A stretch of DNA of 64,000 nt from Anaeramoeba ignava BMAN (GCA_028826165.1 JAPDFW010000096.1:182681-246680), one strand, 5' to 3'. Counted from the first letter of the stretch, positions 17,901 to 37,242 are shown. Notes: generated from the letters alone by a model not told the origin. Numbers and translations are program-made.

Positions 17901-20607
17901 ACTTGACTTCTCTTTCTAATTAATTCTTCTTTAATTTTAGGAACATCTTTTTGTAAATTTTCCATTTCATCTTCATTAACAATTGAATCTTGATTTACTT
18001 GAGCTTGAGAATTAATAAATTCTTTATATTTTTGAATTTTATCATTTAAAAGATCATTTTGATAAGATAAATGTTCAAGAAGTGAAGTATGAATATGTAA
18101 AGCGTCTCTCAATCTTGAATCGGAAATTGCTGTTTAAATATTTTAAAAATTTTCAATGAAAAAAAAAGCAATAAATTTTTTTTAATTTGTTTTTTTTTCA
18201 CAAACTTAGAAAATTTGAATGTGTCATATCTGTAATATCTTCATTTAATGGTTGTAATTGAGATTTTCTAACAAACATTCCATGTTTTGGTTTACAAGAA
18301 AAATAAGGAATTGATTCAACCGAACCATCACATTTTCCAGCTTTTTTATAAATAATTTTATAAATAATTTTATAAATAATTTAATAAATAATTTTATTAA
18401 TAATTTTATATATAATTTTATAAATAATTTTATATTTAATTTTATAAATAATTTTATAATTAATTTAATAAATAATTTTATAAATAATTTAATAATAATT
18501 TTATATTTAATTTTATATTTAATTTTATATTTAATTTTATAAATAATTTTATAAATAATTTTATATTTAATTTTATATTTAATTTTATATTTAATTTTAT
18601 AAATAATTTAATAAATAATTTTATAAATAATTTTATAAATAATTTTATAAATAATTTTATAAATAATTTTATAAATAATTTTATAAATAATTTTATATAT
18701 AATTTTATAAATAATTTTATAAATAATTTTATAAATAATTTTATAAATAATTTTATAAATAATTTAATAAATAATTTTATATTTAATTTTTTATATTTAA
18801 TTTAATAATTAATTTAATAATTAATTTTATAAATAATTTTATAATTAATTTTATATTTAATTTTATATTTAATTTTATATTTAGTTTTATATTTATTTTT
18901 ATAATTAATTTTATAAATAATTTTATAAATAATTTAATAATAATTTTATATATAATTTTATAAATAATTTAATAAATAATTTTATAATTAATTTTATAAA
19001 TAATTTTATAAATAATTTTATAATTAATTTTATTAAATAATTTTATAAATAATTTTATAAATATTTTTATAATTAATTTTATAATTAATTTTATAAATAA
19101 TTTTATATTTAATTTTATAATTAATTTTATAAATAATTTTATATTTAATTTTATATTTAATTTTATATTTAATTTTATAATTAATTTTATAAATAATTTT
19201 ATAAATAATTTAATAAATAATTTTATAAATATTTTTATAAATAATTTTATAATTAATTTAATAATTAATTTTATAAATAATTTTATAAATAATTTTATAA
19301 ATAATTTTATAATTAATTTTATAAATAATTTTATAAATAATTTTATAAATAATTTTATAAATAATTTAATAAATAATTTAATAAATAATTTTATAAATAT
19401 TTTTATAAATAATTTTATAAATATTTTTATAAATAATTTTATAATGAATTTTTATATATAATTTTATAAATAATTTTATAAATAATTTTATAAATAATTT
19501 TATAAATAATTTTATAAATAATTTTATAAATAATTTTATAAATAATTTTATAAATAATTTTATAAATAATTTTATAAATAATTTTATAAATAATTTTGTA
19601 AATAATTTTATATTTAATTTTATAAAATAATTTTATAAATAATTTTATAAATAATTTTATATTTAATTTTATAAATAATTTTATAATTAATTTTATAATT
19701 AATTTTATAAATAATTTTATATTTAATTTTATAATTAATTTTTATAAATAATTTTATAAATAATTTTTATAAATAATTTTATAAATAATTTTATAAATAA
19801 TTTTATAAATAATTTTATATTTAATTTTATAATTAATTTTATATTTAATTTTATAAATAATTTATTAAATAATTTTATAAATAATTTTATAAATAATTTT
19901 TATAATTAATTTTATAAATAATTTTATAAATAATTTAATAAATAATTTTTATATTTAATTTTATAAATATTTTTATAAATAATTTTATAAATAATTTTAT
20001 AAATAATTTTATATATAATTTTATAAATAATTTTATAATTAATTTTATAAATAATTTAATAAATAATTTTATAAATAATTTTATATTTAATTTTATAAAA
20101 TAATTTAATAAATAATTTTATAAATAATTTTATAAATAATTTTATAAATAATTTTATAAATAATTTTATAAATAATTTTATAAATAATTTAATATTTAAT
20201 TTTATAAATAATTTAATATTTAATTTTATAAATAATTTTATATATAATTTTATAAATAATTTTATAAATAATTTTATAAATAATTTTATAATTAATTTTA
20301 TAAATAATTTTATAATTAATTTTATAAATAATTTTATAAATAATTTAATATTAATTTAATAAATAATTTTATATTTAATTTTATAAATAATTTTATAAAT
20401 AATTTTATAAATAATTTTATAAATAATTTTATAAATAATTTTATAAATAATTTTATAATGAATTTAATAATAATTTTAATTACTTGGAGTCATTAATTCT
20501 ATTCCAACCCAAGTTCCTGGTGCGAATTGAGTTTCTCCAATATATCTAACAGTACAATAAAAATCTTCAAATTTGCATTTTTCTCCAATACGAATATCAA
20601 AAGACAT
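14996..20607 (-). CDS. RasGEF with N-terminal CAP-Gly, coiled coil, LisH-like motif, REM and CDC25 domains; exons 20607-20484, 18340-18206, 18129-17876, 17772-17580, 17472-17257, 17170-16910, 16834-16688, 16621-16451, 16227-14996
   Basis: All 8 GT-AG joins are in frame. CAP-Gly VRYIGET.FAPGTWVGIEL..PTGKCDGSV...YFSC.PKHGMFV; LisH-like IIDKLIIQHYL...RSDIAQLL; REM FLMTYRTF; CDC25 ARQLT, NFN, PCIPYLGLYLTD. Confidence 0.9.
18347..20475. repeat. 12-bp satellite (TTTTATAAATAA)n filling the 2143-nt intron 18341-20483, which splits the CAP-Gly domain
   Basis: Continuous 12-mer array with minor variants. Confidence 0.95.
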
Positions 20608-24846: not shown

Positions 24847-27800
24847 TCAGATATCAAACTTGCGATCAGGATCTTGTGCATCATCTGGATACATATCCAT
24901 TTCATTTTGAAAATTCATATCCGAATCTTGTGAGAAATAAGTAGAAATAATTTCAGAAGCTTTTTCATAAATTTCTTCATTTGGATGTTTTTGTAATTCT
25001 TCAATTTTTGGAACAACACCAAGTTCCTCAATTATAACTGCATATGCATTTTCAGGATCAGGTGATTCATCACCAACTTCAAGAATAGATTGAAGAGCAT
25101 CTAAACAAACACTTATTATATCAGCATTATTACTTGAAGTAAGAAGATTACAAATTGGTTCTATTGAATCAAGTTCAACAATATATCTAACAAAAGAAAA
25201 CAAAACAAAAAAAAAAGAAAGGATTAAAATTAGGATCATTTTTAAATTTGAAAATGAAAAGAAAACAAACCGAATTTGTTGAGATTTTGCTCCTGTAATT
25301 GCATTAGAAACTGTCCATGCTGCTTCTTTTTTAACTTCTAAATCATCATTCTTTAAAATGTTAATTACTTTTTCCATTAAATTTGGAACATCAAGAACTT
25401 GTTGTATTTGAGTTTCAATTCCAGCAGTTATATTAGAAAGAATCCAACAAATTTCTTTGCGAATAGCTTTTCGTGGATTATCTAAGAAAGTGCATAAATT
25501 TTCTAGTGGTTTATAATTAAGAACAAGTTCTGTTTGATTATCTGTTCCAGTAACAATATTTCCAATTGCTCTAAGAACAGGAGTTAAAAGTTTAAGGTTG
25601 TCACTCCTTTTTTAATTTTATAAATTAATTTTAATTTTAATTTTAATTTTAATTTTAATTTTAATTTTCAAAATGAATTTTAATTTTATAAATGAATTTT
25701 AATTTTAATTTTATAAATTAATTTTAATTTTAATTTTAATTTTAATTTTAATTTTAATTTTAATTTTAATTTTAATTTCAATTTTAATTTCAATTTTAAT
25801 TTTAATTTTAATTTTAATTTTAATTTTAATTTTAATTTTAATTTTAAATTTAATTTTAATTTTAATTTTAATTTCAATTTTAATTTTAATTTAAATTTAA
25901 ATTTTATAAATTAATTTTAATAATTTATAGAAATTAAACCTGAGTAAACTAATAAGTGTGGGTACAATTCCAGAGTTTACACATTCTTCAATTTCATCAT
26001 CATTTCCATTTGTAAGATATGATAATGCCCAGCATGAATCAATAACTGTATCTATATTACTACTATTAATTAATCTTTCTAAAAATGGAAGAGCTATCGA
26101 AACCTAAAAGAATTAATTTTAATTTTGATTTCATTTTTGATTTTTAAGATAAATTTAATTTGATTTCATTTTTGATTTCATTTTTGATTTTGATTTTAAA
26201 TATAATAATTACACTTTTAAAATCTGGTTTTGGTTTTCCACGAGAAAGATTAGAAATTGCCCAAGCAGAATTTTGAATAATTCCTTCATTTGTAGTTACT
26301 CTTAATATTGTAAGAATTTTTTCCATTGTTCCTAAATTAAGAAGTTCATCTCGATATTTAATTTGATCTCCTGCAATATTTCCAATTGCCCAAATTGACT
26401 TTTTAGAAATAAAATTTTATAAATAATTTTATAAATAATTTTATAAATAATTTTATAATTAATTTTATAAATAATTTTATAAATAATTTTATAAATAATT
26501 TTATAAATAATTTTATAAATAATTTTATAAATAATTTTATAAATAATTTTATATTTAATTTTATAAATAATTTAATAAATAATTTTATAAATAATTTTAT
26601 TAATTTTATAAATAATTTTATAAATAATTTTATAAATAATTTTATAAATAATTTTATAATTAATTTTATAAATAATTTTATATTTAATTTTATAAATAAT
26701 TTTATAAATAATTTTATAAATAATTTTATAAATAATTTTATAAATAATTTTATAAATAATTTTATAAATAATTTTATAATAATTTTATAATTAATTTTAT
26801 AAATAATTTTATAAATAATTTTATAATTAATTTTATAAATAATTTTATAATTAATTTTTAATTTTATATTTAAATAATTTTTAAATAATTTTATAAATAA
26901 TTTTATATTTAGTTTTATAAATAATTTTATAAATAATTTTATAAATAATTTTATAAATAATTTTATAATTAATTTTATAAATAATTTTATATTTAATTTT
27001 ATATTTAATTTTATAAATAATTTTATATATAATTTTATAAATAATTTAATAAATAATTTAATAATTAGTTTTATATTTAATTTTATAAATAATTTTATTA
27101 ATAATTTTATAATTAATTTTATAAATAATTTTATATATAATTTTATAAATAATTTTATAAATAATTTTATAATTAATTTTATATATAATTTAATAATTAA
27201 TTTTATATATAATTTAATAATTAATTTTATATTTAATTTTATAAATAATTTAATAAATAATTTTATTTTACTTGTTCTTGGACATCTTCATCAGAAGAAG
27301 AAAGTAAATTAACAAAAATTGGAATTGCACCTTCTTTTACAACAGTTTTTGTTTGTTCTTTTGTACCTGAAGCTATATTTGTTAAGATCCATGCAGCCTC
27401 AAACTAATTTTTTAAAAAAAAGTTTATTTTTTCAATTAATTTGGACTTAAATAAATTTTTCAAATTAATTTTTACTAAAATTTTTGGATCTTCTGAATGT
27501 TTTAATAATTGAACCAATCTTGGTGTTATTCCAATATCTACAATTTGTTTTATAGGTGGTTGGTTTTCAACAGAAATAAGTTTTCGTACTTTAACAAGTG
27601 CTAATTTTAAATCATTTTCATTATTTCCATTAATTGCTTGAGCATATTGTGGTAATAATTGTAACTATCAATCACAATTTTATTATTTAATTTTAATTAT
27701 AATATAAATTTTAATTTCAATTTTAATTTTGATATTAATTTTAATTTTAATTTTAATTTTAATTTTAATTTGAATTTTAATTTTAATTTTAATTTTAATT

Positions 27801-28858
27801 TTAATTTTAATTTTAATTTTAATTTTATAAATGAATTTTAATTTTAATTTTAATTTTAATTTTAATTTTAATTTTAATTTTAATTTTAATTTTAATTTTA
27901 ATTTTAATTTTAATTTTAATTTTAAATTTTAATTTTAATTTTAATTTTAAAAATTTTTTTTAATTTTAATTAATTTCAATTTTTAATTTCAAGTTTTTAA
28001 TTTTAATTTTAATTTTAATTTTAATTTTAATTTTAATTTTAATTTTGATTTTAATTTTAATTTTAATTTTAATTTTAATTTTAATTTTAATTTTAATTTT
28101 AATTTTGAATTTCAAATTTTAATTTTAATTTTAATTTTAATTTTAATTTTAATTTTAATTTTAATTTTAATTTTAATTTTAATTTTAATTTTAATTTTAA
28201 TTTTAATTTTAATTTTTAATTTTAATTTCAAAATTATAATTTTAAAATTTTAATTTTTAATTTTAATTTCAAATTTTAATTTTAATTTTAAATTTTAATT
28301 TTAATTTTAATTTTAATTTTAATTTTAATTTTAATTTTAATTTTAATTTTTAATTTTAATTTTAATTTTTAAATTTTAATTTTAATTTTAATTTTAATTT
28401 TAATTTTAATTTTAAATTTTCAAATAAATTTTAATTTTATAAATGAATTTTAATTTTAATTTTAATTTTAAATTTAATTTTAATTTTAATTTTAAATTTA
28501 ATTTTAATTTTAATTTTAATTTTAATTTTAATTTTTAATTTCAAATTTAATTTTAATTTTATAATTGAATTTTAATATAAATATAAATTCGAAATTGAAA
28601 TTATTCGAATTTGGATTGAGATCTAAAAAAGTGATATATAAATACATGTTGATCAATAAATTCTTGATCATCAATGTCATCTGAATCACTAGATTCGTCT
28701 TTTCTAGAATGAAAAAATCTTTTTTTCATAAGTTGTTGTTCTCTTTTATCTTTACTTATCTGAATTGACATTTGCAATCTTTTTGTTCTAGATTCTGAAA
28801 AATCTATTTTTTTTTTATAATTTCCTTTTCTTCTTGAAATTCTTTGTATATAACTCAT
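24847..28858 (-). CDS. KPNA: Importin-alpha; exons 28858-28646, 27664-27476, 27403-27272, 26398-26213, 26103-25940, 25606-25271, 25186-24847
   Basis: IBB domain ([12 protein letters not shown]); ARM motifs [57 protein letters not shown]; all splice joins in frame. Confidence 0.95.
26415..27265. repeat. 12-bp satellite (TTTTATAAATAA)n in importin-alpha intron 26399-27271
   Basis: Same unit as the 18347-20475 array. Confidence 0.93.
27690..28570. repeat. (TTTTAA)n in importin-alpha intron 27665-28645
   Basis: Hexamer array. Confidence 0.92.
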
Positions 28859-29193
28859 TTTATTTATGTTTTTGTTTTTATTTTTGATGTTTTTATTTTG
28901 ATGTTTTTATGTTTATGTTTTTATGTTTTTGTTTTTTTTGTTTTTGAAATGTAAAAAAAAAAATTTGAAAAGAAAAAAAATGAAAAAAAGGATTTTGAAT
29001 TTAATTTAATTAATTTTTTTATTTTTTTTTTATTAAAATAAAAAGGAAAAAAACAAAAGGAGAAAAAAAAATTTTTTTTATTTTTTTTAAATTAATTAAT
29101 AAAAAAGAAAAGGAGAAAAATAATTTTATTTTTTATTTTTTATTTTTTATTTTTATTTTTCATTTTTTTCTTTTCAAATTTTGTTATTCTTAA

Positions 29194-32140
29194 ATGGTAA
29201 ATAAAATAAAATAAAATAAAATAAAATAAATAAAATAAGCAAATTTTTTTTTATATTTTTTTTTGAAAATGAAAAAAACTAACCAAATAATTGCGCATAA
29301 ATTTAATATGTCCTCAAATAATAGGCACAAAAACCAAAAGATATTCCACTTGATGAAAGACCAGATGATGATGGATTTAAAGCACCTCCAAAAGTTGCTA
29401 CAACTGAATTAATTGACAAAGATAAAGATGATGAAAGTTTAAACAAATGGAAATCTTCTTTGCTTGGAAATGTTAAGTTGGATGAAGATCGTAAATTTTG
29501 CTTTCTTTTCTTCTTTCCTTTCTTTTTTTTTGCTTCCTTTGTTTTCACTTTACAAATTACAAACTACAAAATATAAAATACAAATAATAAATTAAATTAT
29601 AAATTAAATTATAAATAAAATTATAAATAAATTATAAATAAAATAATAAATAAAATAATAAACTAAATAATAAATAAAATTATAAATTAAATTATAAATA
29701 AAATAAATAAAATTATAAATTAAATTATAAATAAAATTATAAATAAAATTATAAATAAAATTATAAATAAAATTATAAATAAAATTATAAATAAAATTAT
29801 AAATAAAATTATAAATAAAATTATAAATAAAATTATAAATAAAATTATAAATAAAATTATAAATAAAATTATAAATAAAATTATAAATAAAATTATAAAA
29901 TTAAATTATAAATTAAATTATAAAATTAAATTATAAATTTCAAATTATAAAAATAAAAAAATTATAAATTAAATTATAAATTAAAATTATAAATAAAATT
30001 ATAAAATAAAATTATAAATTAAATTATAAATAAAATTATAAATAAATTATAAATAAAAATTATAAATAAAATTATAAATAAAATTATAAATTAAAAATAA
30101 ATAAAATTATAAATTAAATTATAAATAAAATTATAAATTAAATTATAAATTAAATTATAAATTAAATTATAAATTAAATTATAAAATAAAATTATAAATT
30201 AAAATTATAAATAAAATTATAAATTAAAATTATAAAATAAAAAATATAAAAAAAAATTAAAAATTAAATTATAAATTAAAATTATAAATTAAATTATAAA
30301 TTAAATTATAAATTAAATTATAAATTAAATTATAAATTAAATTATAAATTAAATTATAAATAAATTATAAATAAAATATAAATTAAATTAAATAAATTAA
30401 ATTATAAATTAAATTATAAATTAAATTATAAATAAAATTATAAAATTAAATTATAAATAAAAATTATAAAATAAAATTATAAAATAAAATTATAAATAAA
30501 AATTATAAATAAAATTATAAATAAAATTATAAATAAAATTATAAATTAAATTATAAATTAAATTATAAATTAAATTATAAATTAAATTATAAATTAAATT
30601 ATAAATAAAATTATAAATAAAATTATAAATAAAATTATAAATAAAATTATAAATTAAATAATAAATAAAATTATAAATAAAATTATAAATTAAATTATAA
30701 ATTAAATTATAAATTAAATTATAAATTAAATTATAAATTAAATTATAAATAAAATTATAAATTAAATTATAAATAAAATTATAAATTAAATAATAAATTA
30801 AATTATAAATTAAATTATAAATTAAACAGCAAATCTTCCACATGTTTCAATTATGGAATTAAGAGTTTTAATACCAGGAAGAGATGATATTGTTCTTCAT
30901 CTTGATAAAAAAGAAGAAATTGAAAAATTACCAAAAAATCCATTCGTTTTAAAAGAAGGAACATCATATCGTTTCCAACTCAGATTTAAAGTAAGAAGAG
31001 AAATTGTTGTTGGATTAAAAAGCATGACTTTTGTTTACAAAAAAGGAATTCGAGGTAAATTATAAATTAATAATTTTAATAATAATTTTATTAATAATTT
31101 TAATAATAATTTTTATAATAATTTTAATAATAATTTTATAAATAATTTTAATAATAATTTTATAAATAATTTTAATAATAATTTTATAAATAATTTTATT
31201 AATAATTTTATAAATAATTTTATTAATAATTTAAATAATAATTTTATTAATAATTTTATAATATTTTTAATAATATTTTTATTAATAATTTTATAATAAT
31301 TTAATTAATAATTTTAATAATAATTTTATTAATAATTTTATAACAATTTTATTAATAATTTTATTAATAATTTTAATAATAATTTTAATAATAATTTTAA
31401 TAATAATTATAATAATTTTAATAATAATTTAATAATAAATTTAAGAATAATTTTAATAATAATTTTATAATAATTTAATTAATAATTTTTATTAATAATT
31501 TTTATAATAATTTAATTAATAATTTTATTAATAATTTTATAATAATTTAATTAATAATTTTATTAATAATTTTATTAATAATTTTATAATAATTTTATTA
31601 ATAATTTTATTAATAATTTTTATAATAATTTTAATAATAATTTTATAAATAATTTTAATAATAATTTTATAAATAATTTTAATAATAATTTTATAAATAA
31701 TTTTATTAATAATTTTATTAATAATTTTATAAATAATTTTAATAATAATTTTAATAATAATTTTATAAATAATTTTATAAATAATTTTAATAATAATTTA
31801 ATTAATAATTTTTATAATAATTTTATTAATAATTTTAAATTGATTCTTTTTTTTAAGTTGATAAATCTGAACAAATGATTGGTTCTTATGGTCCACAACA
31901 AGACTTACATAGTTTTACTTATCCTGAAGACACAGCACCAACAGGAATGCTTGCTCGTGGTCATTACAAAGCAAAATCAAGAGTAAAACTTTATTTTTAA
32001 ATTGAAAAAAATTTCTTTTGTTTTATTTATTTATTTATTTATTTTATTAGTTCATTGATGATGATCTTACAAATCATTTAGAGTTCAGATACACATTTGA
32101 TATCAGAAAGAAATGGCCTGAAGAAGAGAAAAAGAAATAA
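29194..32140 (+). CDS. ARHGDI: Rho GDP-dissociation inhibitor; exons 29194-29196 (ATG only), 29325-29490, 30830-31054, 31858-31982, 32051-32140
   Basis: DKDDESLNKWKSSLLG, FVLKEG..Y, EIVVGLK, MIGSYGP, APTGMLARGHY, FIDDD. Confidence 0.95.
29570..30825. repeat. 12-bp satellite (TTATAAATWAAA)n in RhoGDI intron 29491-30829
   Basis: Continuous array; source of the spurious IYNL/IYNF ORF. Confidence 0.92.
31070..31840. repeat. 12-bp satellite (TTTTAWTAATAA)n in RhoGDI intron 31055-31857
   Basis: Continuous array. Confidence 0.9.
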
Positions 32141-32352: not shown

Positions 32353-35300
32353 TTATTTAAATTGATTTTTAATTGATTTTTGAATAAATTTAGAATAAAC
32401 TGAAATAACTTCATTTGTAATTTTAGGATAATTCATTCCTTTTGGAAGTAAACTTTGTAAATTTTTAGATTCAAAAAATAAAGAATCAGGTAAAAAATCT
32501 TGTTGGAAAAAAACAATAAAAGGTCGAAGTGGATGTTTTTCATCTTCAATTTGTAATAATTTCCTACGAAATTGAAAAAGTGGAATTTTCTTGATTTGGA
32601 AGTTGTCATTTTTAATCAAACAATCCAAAACGAACCAAAGTGAAGATTCAAATGGATTTGATAAATGAAAAGCAGAAAAAGAAAACAATTTATTAGAAGG
32701 GTTTTTTAAAGTGATCTCGCAAACAGCTTTTGCACAAAAATCAACAGGAACAAGATTCAGTTTCATATCTTCGTCGGGTGCATAGCCCAAAAGCGCAAAT
32801 CCAGTGATAAGCATATTATTCATATCTTTTGGATTTAAAAAACCAGTTAAAGTGGAACAAAATACACTTGCAGGTCGCCAAATTGTGATCATTGGATTGT
32901 AAGCTTTTTTGAATTGATTAACCAAATTCTCAGCAACCCATTTTGACTGTGTATATCCTTGTTGCCCGTTTGGCACATCTTCAAAGGGGTTTGTGTCCTC
33001 ATTGAGCATTTTTTGTTTCTTACTTCTTGAGTATAAATACGAACTAAAAAAAACAGAAACAGTCGAAAAATAATGTATTGGAGTTTTTTGCTCAGGAATA
33101 AGCGAAAGTTTAAGCACTTCAATTGTCCCTAGAACATTTGGCGCGCGTAGAATGGAATAGGGCAGGAATGAATCCACTAATGCTCCACTGTGAAAAATAA
33201 CATCAATTTGATTTCCCAATTCAAAAAATTTTGCTTTTGCTAGTCCAAAATTTGGAAGAGAAAGATCGCCTGGAATAATGCTAATTTTTTCTTCATAATC
33301 CTTCATTAGTGGTGATTCTAATCCCGCAGTTTCCAAAAGCCCTCTCACTCGATCCAGTCCGCTTTCCTCATCCTTGCAACGAATAAGACAAGCAACACTC
33401 TTCACAAAATCTAATTGCACAAATTCCCAAAGGAGATGGATCCCAATAAACCCTGTGCATCCTGTTAGGAATATTCGCTCGTTTTTGAGATGTTTACTGA
33501 TCTCGCTCAATTTTTTGTCAGAATCAATATAAGCAGAAAGATCAGTTTCTTTTGACCAATCAATTTGTTCATTTTTTTGGAATCCCGAATACAAATCCGG
33601 ATTGCAAATGAACGTGATCAGATCTTCAAGAGGTTTGTAAAGAAGATTTTGAGGGAGATCAATGTGATATTTATTGCTTATTGTGGATCTAAGACGTATT
33701 ACACTTAAGGAATCTGCGCCTTGATCATAAAAGGAAAGATTGGGTAAAATTTCTTGAACAGAAAGAATAGATTTGATCACGGAAGTCACTTCTTTTCGGA
33801 TTTTTAATGATGGGTCAATGAAATTTGATTGATTTTCCGTATTTTCGTGATTTGAATTGAAATCCAAATTAAATGATAAAGGATTTGATTCAAGATCTTT
33901 GTACATCTTGTCGATAATTTCCTTGTAATAACGCTCAATATTGGGTCTATTGACTTTCAAAGAAGGAGTCAAAAGCCCATTTTCGATTGAAAATAAAGTG
34001 GTTGAGTCAATGTGAACTGCTCGTGGGATTTCATAAGGTTGAAGTTTTTTTTGCTGAGCCAACTCTCTAAAAATTTTCTGACAAGCAAAAAAATCCACTT
34101 TATTTTGCCTTCCAACTTCGGACAAAATTACAACTGAAACGACATAATCTTTTCCTGGAGAAGCATGAATATAAACATAATTAAAAAAAGGAGAATCAGA
34201 AAAAACAGACTCTAAATAAGTTGGACTAACAAAGGTTGCTTGAGCCAATTTGACAATGTTTTTTTTTCTGTCTATCAGAACAAAACGCTTTGCAGAAACA
34301 CGGCGACCAATGTCTCCAGTGCGGAAATAGCCATCAGAAGTAAATGCCTTCTTTGTTTCTTCTGGGTTATTGAAATAGGAGTCGATCATGTTCTTTGTTT
34401 TGACACAAATTTCTCCCGTTTCCTTCCCATCATAACCGAGTTCCTCACAAGGCTCCAACTTGACTTCAACATCATCATAAAGCTCAGTATCGCCAGCAAT
34501 ATCGCCGGCCTCAGTTGTACCAAAAGAGTCTGTAAAGAGACTCTGGTCAAAAGTTTTCTTGAGAAAGTCCTTCGTTATCTGGCTCAACATCGCTCCACCA
34601 CTAATAATCATTTTCACTCTTGATCCTAATTTTTTCGAAAATTTTTTCCTCAATTCATTTTCAATTTGTGATTTTTCTTGATCAGAAGAAACATTTTTTG
34701 CCAGTCCAAATAATTCATTTTCAAACTCAATCCGAATAACATCAAAAATGCGAGGTGGAGCAGAAAAAGAGATGGGATTTGTGATCTGTAAATCCTCGAA
34801 AAGATGATCCACACCACGTGATATTGCTACTCGTCCTCCCATAAACGGAACCGTAATGCCTGATGCGCGATCCATCATCTGTGAAAGTGATGAAAATGCG
34901 AGAATAACAATTGGCTTGAAAAAATCTTTATGGCTGTCGAATTTCTGGCTCCACATCTCGTTTGTGAAAACTGCACCTTTTGGAGATCCTGTTGAACCAG
35001 AAGTGAAAACGATTGTGAAAATTTTTTTTGGATCGCGGATTATTGGTTCGAATTGATCGAAAAAAAGATTTATTTTCTCAACAAAAAACGGTTTTTTCAC
35101 TTTTTCGATTTGGTAAATTAAATTGTTTTTTTCAAGTTGATTTGTTTCGTTTTTGAGTTTCTGTTTCAAAATGCGGATTTTCTTGCGAATTTTTTCTGGA
35201 TAAATTGGATTGATTCCAATTTCTGATTTTTCATCAAAAGAAGCAATTTTGAATTTGATATCAATTTTCTCTTTTTCGAAAAAAAGCAGAATATCATTGA

Positions 35301-35877
35301 AACGGGGAATCAAACTTTCCTCAGTGACTACAAGAATAGGATGGGTTTGTTGAATGATTTGAATGATTTTTTCATTGGAAGAAGTATGATGAATAGGAAC
35401 AGTAGAAAGACCAAGTAAAACACAAGCGAAATCTGAAATATACCATTGGAGACAACTTCGACCACAAATAACAACAAAAACATTTTCTGAAGATTCGCTT
35501 GGCAAAGATTCACCGCACAATTTTTGGAAAAGACTCACAGTTGTCAATATTCTAAAGAAAACTTCTCGAAAACTTATCCAACTTAAATTCCCCTTTTTAT
35601 TGAAAATTCCAAAACATTGACGAGTTGAATATTCTTGAAAAATTGCCACATAACAATTTGATAGTGATTTTTTTGCTCTTAAAATGATATTTTCTTGATG
35701 TGTATAATCGTGATATCTGTCTTTATACATTATATGATTATGACCAGTTTTTTTAAAGCATTCGGGACATAAATCAAAATTTTCACATTCAGAACAATGA
35801 TATCTTAATTGTCCTTCTTCTATTTCTTTTCTACATAAATCACAAAACCAAAAAAATTGAGTTTTTGAAAAATCCAT
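32353..35877 (-). CDS. Carboxylic acid reductase-like NRPS-like enzyme: ZZ zinc finger + adenylation + carrier (PCP) + thioester reductase domains; intronless
   Basis: ZZ CDLC...RYHCSECENFDLCPEC...H.H; A domain FTSGSTGSPKG, FGTTEAG, FRTGDIG, DRKKNIVKLAQ, NGLLTPSLK; PCP QGADSL (Ser723); R domain LTGCTGFIG, GDLS.PNFGL, NVLGT, GYTQSKWVAE. Confidence 0.92.
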   Translation of the reverse strand: MDFSKTQFFWFCDLCRKEIEEGQLRYHCSECENFDLCPECFKKTGHNHIMYKDRYHDYTHQENIILRAKKSLSNCYVAIFQEYSTRQCFGIFNKKGNLSWISFREVFFRILTTVSLFQKLCGESLPSESSENVFVVICGRSCLQWYISDFACVLLGLSTVPIHHTSSNEKIIQIIQQTHPILVVTEESLIPRFNDILLFFEKEKIDIKFKIASFDEKSEIGINPIYPEKIRKKIRILKQKLKNETNQLEKNNLIYQIEKVKKPFFVEKINLFFDQFEPIIRDPKKIFTIVFTSGSTGSPKGAVFTNEMWSQKFDSHKDFFKPIVILAFSSLSQMMDRASGITVPFMGGRVAISRGVDHLFEDLQITNPISFSAPPRIFDVIRIEFENELFGLAKNVSSDQEKSQIENELRKKFSKKLGSRVKMIISGGAMLSQITKDFLKKTFDQSLFTDSFGTTEAGDIAGDTELYDDVEVKLEPCEELGYDGKETGEICVKTKNMIDSYFNNPEETKKAFTSDGYFRTGDIGRRVSAKRFVLIDRKKNIVKLAQATFVSPTYLESVFSDSPFFNYVYIHASPGKDYVVSVVILSEVGRQNKVDFFACQKIFRELAQQKKLQPYEIPRAVHIDSTTLFSIENGLLTPSLKVNRPNIERYYKEIIDKMYKDLESNPLSFNLDFNSNHENTENQSNFIDPSLKIRKEVTSVIKSILSVQEILPNLSFYDQGADSLSVIRLRSTISNKYHIDLPQNLLYKPLEDLITFICNPDLYSGFQKNEQIDWSKETDLSAYIDSDKKLSEISKHLKNERIFLTGCTGFIGIHLLWEFVQLDFVKSVACLIRCKDEESGLDRVRGLLETAGLESPLMKDYEEKISIIPGDLSLPNFGLAKAKFFELGNQIDVIFHSGALVDSFLPYSILRAPNVLGTIEVLKLSLIPEQKTPIHYFSTVSVFFSSYLYSRSKKQKMLNEDTNPFEDVPNGQQGYTQSKWVAENLVNQFKKAYNPMITIWRPASVFCSTLTGFLNPKDMNNMLITGFALLGYAPDEDMKLNLVPVDFCAKAVCEITLKNPSNKLFSFSAFHLSNPFESSLWFVLDCLIKNDNFQIKKIPLFQFRRKLLQIEDEKHPLRPFIVFFQQDFLPDSLFFESKNLQSLLPKGMNYPKITNEVISVYSKFIQKSIKNQFK

Positions 35878-36024
35878 AAAATAAAATTTTTTTTTTGATT
35901 TGATTTGAATTTTTTGAAAGAAGAGAAAAATGGAAATTAAAAAATGAAAATTGAAAAAAGGGAAAAAAAAATAATTTGTTTTTTAAATTTTTTAAAATTT
36001 TTAAAATTAATTTTTTAAAATCTT

Positions 36025-37242
36025 TTAAAAGTCTGGATCAAAAAATTCACCAGCAAGTTCTAAAAGATCACAAGTAACGTCAACAAACCAAGATCGTTTT
36101 TCCTCTTTTTTCTGTTTTTTTTCTTCTTTTTTCTTGTGTTTTTTTTCAATTTTTTTCTGTTTTTTCAATTGTTTTTTTTTGTCTAATTCTTTTTGGGTTT
36201 TTTGGTTTTGATTAATATTTTGAAATTGATTAAAATTCATCATTTGGTTTTGGTTTTGATTTACATTTGCATTTATATTCATATTCATCATTTGATTTTG
36301 CATCATTTGATTTTGATTTTGATTTACATTCATATTCATCATTTGATTTTGATTTTGATTTACATTCATATTCATCATTTGATTTTGATTTTGATTTTGA
36401 TTTTGATTTTGATTTTGATTTTGATTTTGATTTTGATTTTGATTTTGATTTTGATTTTGATTTGGCATTTGCATCATTGGATTTTGATTTTGATTTGGCA
36501 TTTGCATCTCGGGATTTTGCATCATTTGATTTTGATTTGGCATTGGCATTGGTGTTTGGTAATTGGTTGTTGGCATTAATCCAACATGTTGAAGTTTCAA
36601 CATCACTTGTTGATGAAAAACAGCAATTTCTTTAAGCATTTGGAAAATTGGAACAATGAATTTTGCATAACGATTGTTGATAACTTCATTCATTTCAAAA
36701 ACAGTTTCCATTTTAATTTGATTGTATTTTTGAGTTGCTTCTTCTTCTCTTTTTTGCGCTTCTTCTAGTTTTTCTGTTTCCGTTTTTTTCTTTTCAAGTA
36801 ATTTCAAACGGTCTTTTTGGGCCATTTGAAGATCCAAAGCAATTGAGTTTCTGTTTTTAATTTTCTTATTAACTTGTGCTAACAAAGCAATTTCTTTTCG
36901 AATCTGGTTTTCTTTGAGTTGATCCTCAACAATTTTCTTCAGTTCCTTTTCGATTTCTTTAATTTGCAACCCAAAAACATCTGCAGTTGTTCCTAAAGAA
37001 TGATTTTTATGACTTTTTTTGATTTGTGAATTTATTGTTTGAACTGTTTGTTGGATTTCTAAAAGCTGTTTTAAATAATCATGAAATAAACCATAAGCTT
37101 GAGTTGCATTTTTTCCAATCTCAATATATTGTTTATGAACTACATCATATTCAGGATCTTCAAACTTAGATTTTCCTCCAACAGCTTGAAGTGTTTGTTC
37201 CTTTTTTTTTGCGATTGAATGTTTTAATTTTTTCCAACTCAT
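36025..37242 (-). CDS. N-BAR domain protein (amphiphysin/Rvs161-like) with Q/N/M-rich C-terminal region
   Basis: N-terminal amphipathic MSWKKLKHSIAK...FEDPEYD, about 220-aa helical region with KIKNRNSIALDL, then NQ repeats. Confidence 0.75.
   Translation of the reverse strand: MSWKKLKHSIAKKKEQTLQAVGGKSKFEDPEYDVVHKQYIEIGKNATQAYGLFHDYLKQLLEIQQTVQTINSQIKKSHKNHSLGTTADVFGLQIKEIEKELKKIVEDQLKENQIRKEIALLAQVNKKIKNRNSIALDLQMAQKDRLKLLEKKKTETEKLEEAQKREEEATQKYNQIKMETVFEMNEVINNRYAKFIVPIFQMLKEIAVFHQQVMLKLQHVGLMPTTNYQTPMPMPNQNQMMQNPEMQMPNQNQNPMMQMPNQNQNQNQNQNQNQNQNQNQNQNQNQNQMMNMNVNQNQNQMMNMNVNQNQNQMMQNQMMNMNINANVNQNQNQMMNFNQFQNINQNQKTQKELDKKKQLKKQKKIEKKHKKKEEKKQKKEEKRSWFVDVTCDLLELAGEFFDPDF

Follow-up and report, generated by a model that had tools for sequence, protein, structure and literature searches.

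Carboxylic acid reductases (CARs) are important biocatalysts, and the classes described so far come from bacteria (type I) and from fungi (types II-IV). The bacterial type I CAR and FadD9 proteins (Nocardia iowensis, Mycobacterium marinum, Segniliparus rugosus; Protein Data Bank (PDB) accession numbers 5MSC, 5MSO and 5MSP; NCBIfam model NF041592) are ~1170 amino acids long and contain an adenylation (A) domain, a carrier (PCP or T) domain and a reductase (R) domain in collinear order. Fungal CARs (types II-IV, such as NcCAR) and Lys2 share this A-T-R logic, with an essential carrier Ser, Tyr and Lys (PMC5826065), but their A domains resemble those of nonribosomal peptide synthetases (NRPSs) and not that of FadD9. 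The terminal reductase MxaA of the myxalamid polyketide synthase-NRPS (PDB 4U7W, 4W4T) terminates an assembly line instead of forming part of a stand-alone acid reductase, and has no FadD9-type A domain. Neither MxaA nor the fungal enzymes carry a ZZ zinc finger, a double-zinc fold (CxxC...CxxC...CxxC...HxH) that is present in chromatin, autophagy and ubiquitin-ligase proteins such as CBP/p300, p62/SQSTM1, Nbr1, HERC2 and KCMF1. Here we analyze a 64,000-nucleotide stretch of DNA from Anaeramoeba ignava BMAN (GCA_028826165.1 JAPDFW010000096.1:182681-246680; hereafter the window) and, within it, a minus-strand gene at positions 32353-35877 that places a ZZ finger at the head of such a metabolic enzyme. 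On balance, we think it probable that this open reading frame (ORF) belongs to a family found across eukaryotes, that of ZZ-capped acid reductases of the FadD9/CAR type, whose mechanism we assign by homology.

The gene is a single frame of 1174 codons with zero internal stops, in which the ZZ finger is coded in the same unbroken frame as the A-PCP-R body (Table 1), in agreement with a preliminary description of this DNA that called it intronless. The stop codon of the upstream neighbor lies at 36025-36027, and the length and base composition of the spacer between the two genes leave no space for a missed upstream exon. Counting Pfam domains at their curated cut-offs, we found ZZ (residues 12-50; 31.5 bits against a gathering cut-off of 21.4), AMP-binding (134-502; 107.8 bits), PP-binding (696-747; 28.7 bits) and NAD_binding_4 (PF07993; 804-1052; 185.5 bits), all above cut-off, and the thioester-reductase domain model TIGR01746 also exceeded its own (222.7 bits). 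The CAR model NF041592 (carboxyl_red) aligns collinearly with the protein, residues 132-1098 matching positions 102-1074 of 1160, and the best matches among solved structures are the three bacterial CARs (5MSC, 5MSO and 5MSP; E ~1e-79), which span A, PCP and R. Pfam, NF041592 and the PDB CARs thus all place a collinear A-PCP-R order in one polypeptide.

An AlphaFold2 model computed from a 40-sequence family alignment had a mean predicted local distance difference test score (pLDDT) of 83.6, with ~90 in the ZZ finger and confidently modeled helices joining this finger to the A domain; pLDDT was low only at residues 1-6, in an insert at 219-264 and in the A-PCP linker (670-687). When we searched with this model using Foldseek, CAR A and A-PCP structures ranked first (E 1e-44 to 1e-39; template modeling (TM) score ~0.77), leading luciferases and 4-coumarate ligases by >10 orders of magnitude. 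The CAR-like A-PCP-R enzyme of the preliminary description was therefore recovered both by sequence and, for the A domain, by fold. We also located the motifs it had quoted, DRKKNIVKLAQ (536-546), ENGLLTPSLK (with Lys641) and, in the extended short-chain dehydrogenase/reductase (SDR) part, TGCTGFIG as GxxGxxG and YTQSK (975-979) as YxxxK, and the carrier-serine codon it had named is that of Ser723. From these data, we conclude that the protein is a predicted CAR/FadD9-type A-PCP-R enzyme.

With bacterial CARs, to which it is ~23-30% identical, the A. ignava protein shares the A3, A5, A7, A8 and A10 Lys motifs, the GxDSL carrier serine, TGxxGxxG, YxxxK and an expected dependence on an Sfp-type phosphopantetheinyl transferase (PPTase). 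It differs from them in its N-terminal ZZ finger, the insert at 219-264 and the absence of the PxxH His and the hinge Glu. The residues that are kept (the A3 P-loop, A5 Glu456, A7 Asp522, A8 Arg537 and Lys543, A10 Lys641, Ser723, TGxxGxxG, and Tyr975 and Lys979) are invariant or nearly so in the family; Ser723 is invariant across the 40-sequence alignment, and the R domain has both the TGxxGxxG and Tyr-x3-Lys elements. Pfam gave no match in the protein to PF03015, the 'Sterile' domain of fatty acyl reductases (FARs), and A and PCP domains are present, so the protein does not have the makeup of a FAR.

The models for Lys2 (TIGR03443), MxcG and AusA also match the protein, as they might if its substrate were an amino acid, in the manner of the alpha-aminoadipate reductase Lys2 or of other NRPS-like A-T-R enzymes. 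We regard this as very improbable because these matches are confined to the PCP-R part (678-1087) and fall far under their cut-offs; TIGR03443 scored 169.4 bits (678-1064) against 1030.1. The amino acid adenylation model TIGR01733 reached 58.7 bits against a cut-off of 317.4, and the A domain is FadD9/ACSL-like in sequence (DRKKNIVKL, NGLLTPSLK) and CAR-like in predicted fold.

The ZZ finger is closest to that of CBP/p300 (E 1.5e-6), with which all eight zinc ligands are in register. The preliminary description had placed this finger at 35728-35847, within one codon of the interval found here, and we consider it genuine. The putative cage positions of the finger are occupied by Asp13, Asn33 and Asp35, which we take to be equivalent to Asn1671, Asp1688 and Asp1690 of p300 and to Asp129, Asp147 and Asp149 of p62, residues that grip the free N-terminus of the ligand. 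In the 69 ZZ fingers of the family, each of the six zinc cysteines is conserved in 59-68 sequences, and Asp or Asn occupies the three cage positions in 49, 41 and 56, respectively. The ZZ finger probably dates back to the ancestor of the eukaryotic family and is maintained by selection; in the A. ignava protein it retains every zinc ligand and the greater part of the polar cage. Its likeliest role would be to dock the enzyme to a partner protein or to regulate it. The whole A. ignava genome encodes ~7 ZZ domains.

The fusion is not peculiar to A. ignava. A word-index search with the window protein returned 19 matches, the best at 29% identity and none flagged with a ZZ finger; the sole fungal A-T-R protein among them scored 62 bits, which makes the fungal enzymes far more distant relatives. 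The uniqueness that this search of limited sensitivity suggested was overturned by an exhaustive search, which gave 27,351 matches (2,246 at <1e-30), several of the top ones aligned from query residue ~10 and thus through the ZZ finger. Among the best 150 representatives, ~48 have a ZZ-like finger before a CAR-like body, and Pfam confirmed ZZ in four of the eight top matches scanned. A family-specific ZZ profile identified the finger in 69 of 275 fetched proteins. Among named relatives, it is present in 30 of 38 eukaryotic proteins and in 0 of 25 bacterial CAR/FadD9 proteins; many of the unnamed relatives lacking it are N-terminally short sequences.

The carriers include Anaeramoeba flamelloides (three paralogues, KAJ6252280, KAJ3452360 and KAJ3445781), every sampled dictyostelid (among them Dictyostelium discoideum, P0181, and Heterostelium, PPL_05336), the protosteloid and other amoebae Cavostelium, Protostelium, Clastostelium and Stenamoeba, the Archamoebae Mastigamoeba ('fadD9') and Pelomyxa (Pelomyxa schiedti KAH3744291, 'ATP/NADPH-dependent carboxylic acid reductase'), the bdelloid rotifers Philodina (Philodina roseola AEN94433, 'FadD9') and Rotaria, Ancoracysta and Platysulcus. 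Family members are otherwise labeled 'hypothetical protein', 'Carrier domain-containing protein' or similar. The eukaryotic ZZ-A-PCP-R proteins match the A. ignava protein in their four-domain order and make up a single clade, separate from the bacteria. In one Mastigamoeba balamuthi homologue (P0042, 1566 amino acids), a 900-residue N-terminal extension holds two identical ZZ fingers (467-512 and 666-711), which could reflect a tandem duplication or an artefact of the assembly or gene model.

A full-text literature search found no paper that pairs ZZ with a CAR or A-T-R enzyme and none on these protist genes. The preliminary description knew of no characterized ZZ-CAR fusion; our literature search likewise turned up none, whereas the architecture itself is common. 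It defines a widespread eukaryotic family that is apparently undescribed. One functional hint comes from the rotifer Adineta vaga, in which a gene whose best match is a Thecamonas family member belongs to the core radiation response (Core value 4.08; PMC12220480).

To place the A. ignava protein among these relatives, we inferred a tree of the A-PCP-R core from 49 named sequences (15 bacterial, 34 eukaryotic) using IQ-TREE (LG+C20+F+G4 by posterior mean site frequencies, quick search). A branch with an SH-aLRT support of 100 separates 14 of the 15 bacteria from all 34 eukaryotes. The exceptional bacterium, a Planctomycetes sequence from a metagenome-assembled genome (P0064), pairs weakly with the ZZ-less Thecamonas trahens protein (P0039) on the eukaryotic side (support 83); this pairing could mean that the gene crossed between domains a second time or that a eukaryotic contig was assigned to the bacterial bin. 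As the ZZ-less eukaryotic members nest within ZZ-bearing clades, the simplest reading would be that the eukaryotic clade gained the ZZ finger once, long ago, and that its absence from some members reflects scattered loss or truncated gene models.

Within the eukaryotic clade, the window protein groups with its three A. flamelloides sister paralogues (support 100) at 34-40% identity; the mean orthologue identity between the two Anaeramoeba species is 37.3% (PMC11550330). The Anaeramoeba clade adjoins Stenamoeba and the dictyostelids (support 95), and the rotifers adjoin Cavostelium (support 96). The dictyostelid homologues, with only ~30-35% identity to the A. ignava protein, make up a clade of their own. 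The approximately unbiased test rejects holding the 24 amoebozoan rows together (delta lnL 74, p 0.00015), a result that does not specify the responsible outsider and that fits either gene transfer among eukaryotes or ancient paralogues that were lost differentially. The gene lacks introns in both A. ignava and A. flamelloides, which is compatible with, and no proof of, its acquisition before the two species split. The lateral transfer with later ZZ gain that the preliminary description proposed may account for how the eukaryotic clade as a whole arose, but we see no such event in the A. ignava lineage because the gene groups with those of A. flamelloides and is nested among amoebozoan sequences.

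This placement also bears on the idea that the gene came recently from bacteria or belongs to a bacterial contaminant, with a ZZ finger that arose by chance or was mis-joined. Its protein-language-model neighbors are indeed actinobacterial CAR clusters, and it has no introns in a genome that has 0.74 introns per kb (PMC11550330). Nevertheless, its nearest relatives are eukaryotic and bear ZZ fingers, 14 of 15 bacteria lie beyond the fully supported branch, the A. flamelloides orthologues are likewise intronless nuclear genes, and the ZZ finger belongs to the same frame. On a contig of 246 kb, the neighbors in the window are eukaryotic genes (a Patched/sterol-sensing protein, a leucine-rich repeat-ADP-ribosylglycohydrolase, GDPD, RasGEF and VPS9). 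The A+T content of the window is 81.3%, close to the 80.65% reported for the genome (PMC11550330), and the GC content at third codon positions of the gene (25.5%) is at the upper edge of the 12-24% of its neighbors. We conclude that the ZZ-CAR-like gene is a resident nuclear gene of A. ignava and not a contaminant because its neighbors are eukaryotic and its composition is host-like. Both the tree and the genomic context contradict a bacterial origin of this kind, which is barely credible. The supplements of the Anaeramoeba genome paper do not mention the gene and contain no lateral gene transfer call for it (PMC11550330).

Several observations weigh against assigning the protein to the CARs. 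Its NF041592 score of 390.8 falls far short of the 1300 set as equivalog cut-off; of the five residues on which NcCAR activity depends, the protein lacks two (Gln333 stands in place of His and Thr548 in place of Glu); the R domain alone is nearer to MxaA (4U7W, E 3e-42) than to the R domains of CARs, none of which matched to 1e-30; the putative ZZ cage is only partly acidic (Asp, Asn, Asp); and we found no published assay of any ZZ-bearing family member. Because the protein departs from CARs at these two residues and in its equivalog score, we describe it as CAR-like, that is, as probably working like a CAR and placed in a ZZ-capped eukaryotic sister clade of bacterial CAR/FadD9.

The replaced residues raise the question of whether the A domain is still active. 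In Neurospora NcCAR, alanine at His237, Glu433, the carrier Ser, Tyr844 or Lys848 abolishes activity, where His237 belongs to a PxxH motif (His300 in NiCAR) and Glu433 to a hinge xGE(K/F) motif (PMC5826065). The preliminary description had called the adenylation motifs complete, which is true of those it quoted and not of these two positions. In the three A. flamelloides paralogues, the His position is occupied by Glu, Tyr and Tyr and the hinge by Gly-Val; rotifer relatives have Trp and Gly-Gln. His and Gly-Glu are both kept in 15 of 15 named bacteria and, unlike in the A. ignava protein, in nearly all amoebozoan members, so that the replacement appears to be a trait of the Anaeramoeba clade.

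An A domain that no longer activates free acids in the manner of CARs, with acyl groups supplied by another route (in trans or from acyl-CoA), a substrate of quite another kind or impaired catalysis, would account for the joint absence of His and hinge Glu from all four Anaeramoeba proteins, given the conservation of both elsewhere and the effect of alanine at either in NcCAR. We consider this unlikely. The nucleotide-binding and catalytic-lysine motifs are all intact, and in rotifers, where Trp and Gln take the two places, the relatives are expressed and regulated by stress. Elsewhere in the ANL superfamily, active enzymes carry aromatic or other residues at both positions. Between two A. flamelloides strains, the ratio of nonsynonymous to synonymous substitutions (dN/dS) of two paralogues was 0.17 and 0.07, and the A domain was the most constrained part (dN/dS = 0.10 and 0.04, from small counts). 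As the A domain is still under purifying selection, these data suggest that the Anaeramoeba adenylation site is non-canonical but working, with changed substrate handling rather than loss of function.

If the protein indeed works like a CAR, its A domain would use ATP to convert a carboxylic acid to an acyl-adenylate; our best guess for the substrate is an aliphatic or fatty acid because the A domain is FadD9/ACSL-like. The acyl group would then pass to the phosphopantetheine arm on Ser723, an arm presumably attached by the Sfp/AASDHPPT-type transferase of A. ignava. The preliminary description had named the lack of a PPTase as grounds for rejecting its proposal, and we found one such enzyme in the genome (contig C113 of assembly G000; 266 amino acids; AASDHPPT_N 71.6 bits, ACPS 53.6 bits). 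Finally, the carrier would bring the thioester to the C-terminal SDR, where Tyr975, Lys979 and NADPH would release an aldehyde, which might be carried onward to an alcohol.

An aldehyde end product is not assured because the R domain is closer to MxaA, its nearest solved relative when taken alone. Foldseek gave the R domain a TM score of 0.86 to MxaA R versus 0.67 to a CAR PCP-R didomain, and MxaA reportedly makes a primary alcohol. In addition, the R domains of true CARs also reduce aldehydes in a substrate-dependent manner (PMC10168641). The protein could therefore be a four-electron, MxaA-like reductase that takes an acid through the aldehyde to the primary alcohol and serves the cell as a substitute for a FAR. 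The only strong NAD_binding_4 matches in the A. ignava genome are this gene and two NRPS terminal reductase copies, from which it follows that the genome has no canonical FAR. Against this proposal, no consumer of fatty alcohols was found: FAD-oxidase_C had no match in the A. ignava genome, where control genomes gave matches, and genome searches with PF03007 (WS/DGAT), like those with PF03015, gave no match but were equally silent in the control genomes. Two- and four-electron R domains are indistinguishable by sequence, which leaves aldehyde or alcohol output undecidable at this level. We regard alcohol formation as possible though not likely, and as a variant of the CAR-like reading that does not exclude it.

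These genome searches also speak to physiological roles put forward in the preliminary description. As there is no FAD-oxidase_C match, A. ignava appears to lack an oxidase of the alkyl-dihydroxyacetone phosphate synthase (AGPS) type, and a role in ether lipid synthesis is unsupported in this genome. A reductant sink specific to anaerobes is not indicated either because the family spans aerobes and anaerobes alike.

The NRPS that contains one of the other reductases is multimodular (G000:C99:2346-10394; L014:2346-8333, L002:982-2958) and has a near-identical twin (G000:C47:405-7211), both near contig ends. Its first ORF (1995 amino acids) contains two AMP-binding stretches, PP-binding and Condensation domains, and its second (658 amino acids) contains AMP-binding_C, PP-binding and a terminal NAD_binding_4 reductase. 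Elsewhere in the genome (G000:C61:519793-533777; L004, L006 and matches between them), at least three ACSL-like AMP-binding genes lie in tandem and share ~30-36% identity with the window protein's A domain. Each of these matches has one in-frame TAA, presumably in an intron.

Table 1. Features of the ZZ-CAR-like gene and its upstream spacer. Positions are those of the window; residues are those of the 1174-amino acid protein.
Feature	Position	Strand	Residues and details	Basis
ORF, intronless	32353..35877	(-)	1174 amino acids and stop codon (32353-32355); order ZZ - A - PCP - R	Frame translation, Pfam
Spacer between stop codon of upstream gene and ATG of ORF	35878..36024	(-)	147 nt, 10.9% GC; presumed promoter and 5' untranslated region	
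ZZ zinc finger	35728..35844	(-)	12-50; ligands Cys12, 15, 28, 31, 37, 40, His46, 48	Pfam PF00569, CBP/p300 alignment
Adenylation domain, FadD9/CAR-type	33883..35631	(-)	~83-665	Pfam, NCBIfam, PDB alignment, Foldseek
A-domain motifs			A3 TSGSTGSPKG 292-301; A5 FGTTEAG 452-458; A7 YFRTGDIG 517-524; A8 DRKKNIVKLAQATFVSP 536-552; A10 Lys641	
Lys/Asn-rich insert, N-terminal A subdomain	35086..35223	(-)	219-264; predicted disordered or helical, pLDDT <50	
Position of PxxH His (NcCAR His237, NiCAR His300)	34879..34881	(-)	Gln333	SLSQMMDR vs PMSHxxGR
Position of hinge Gly-Glu (NcCAR Glu433)	34234..34239	(-)	Ala547-Thr548	KLAQATFV vs KLSQGEFV
Carrier (PCP/T) domain	33577..33813	(-)	689-767; predicted phosphopantetheine site Ser723 (codon 33709-33711) in GADSL	
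Thioester reductase (extended SDR) domain	32356..33480	(-)	800-1174	Pfam PF07993, TIGR01746
R-domain Rossmann motif	33442-33465	(-)	TGCTGFIG 805-812	
R-domain Thr		(-)	Thr939	
R-domain Tyr-x3-Lys	32941-32955	(-)	Tyr975, Lys979	

Upstream of the ZZ-CAR-like gene, a 405-amino acid ORF on the same strand (36025-37242) has no Pfam match. Its N-terminal half is coiled-coil-like, and it contains a long low-complexity tract dominated by Asn, Gln and Met (NQNQ... repeats) and a tail rich in Lys and Glu. On the 3' side of the gene, positions 26000-32000 and 18000-20000 of the window are extremely AT-rich (GC 4-10% in 2-kb windows), which fits the composition of the genome.

Taking the findings on the ZZ finger, the tree and the adenylation site together, one can propose a reading that is bolder than membership in a CAR-like family. 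The ZZ finger would define a fifth, eukaryote-specific CAR class, and its polar cage would bind the free N-terminus of a partner or another primary amine, thereby tethering or gating acid reduction, for example by handing the aldehyde straight to a downstream enzyme. The gene would have passed from amoebozoans to Anaeramoeba and to bdelloid rotifers, and in Anaeramoeba adenylation would have been rewired without the canonical His and Glu. We offer this combined proposal as speculative and, in our own judgment, doubtful.

Beyond the bacterial and fungal classes described so far, this gene points to a large additional clade of CAR-like enzymes in eukaryotes. ZZ fingers are modules known from chromatin and protein-degradation factors, and a functional one on a metabolic enzyme would be unusual. 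A. ignava is an anaerobe that has neither a canonical FAR nor an AGPS-type oxidase, and this gene is its only stand-alone reductase of the thioester type. The Anaeramoeba variants suggest that the 'essential' His and Glu of CARs may be replaceable under continued selection, which is relevant to enzyme engineering. The D. discoideum member makes the biological role of the family testable by knockout, deletion of the ZZ finger and pull-down.

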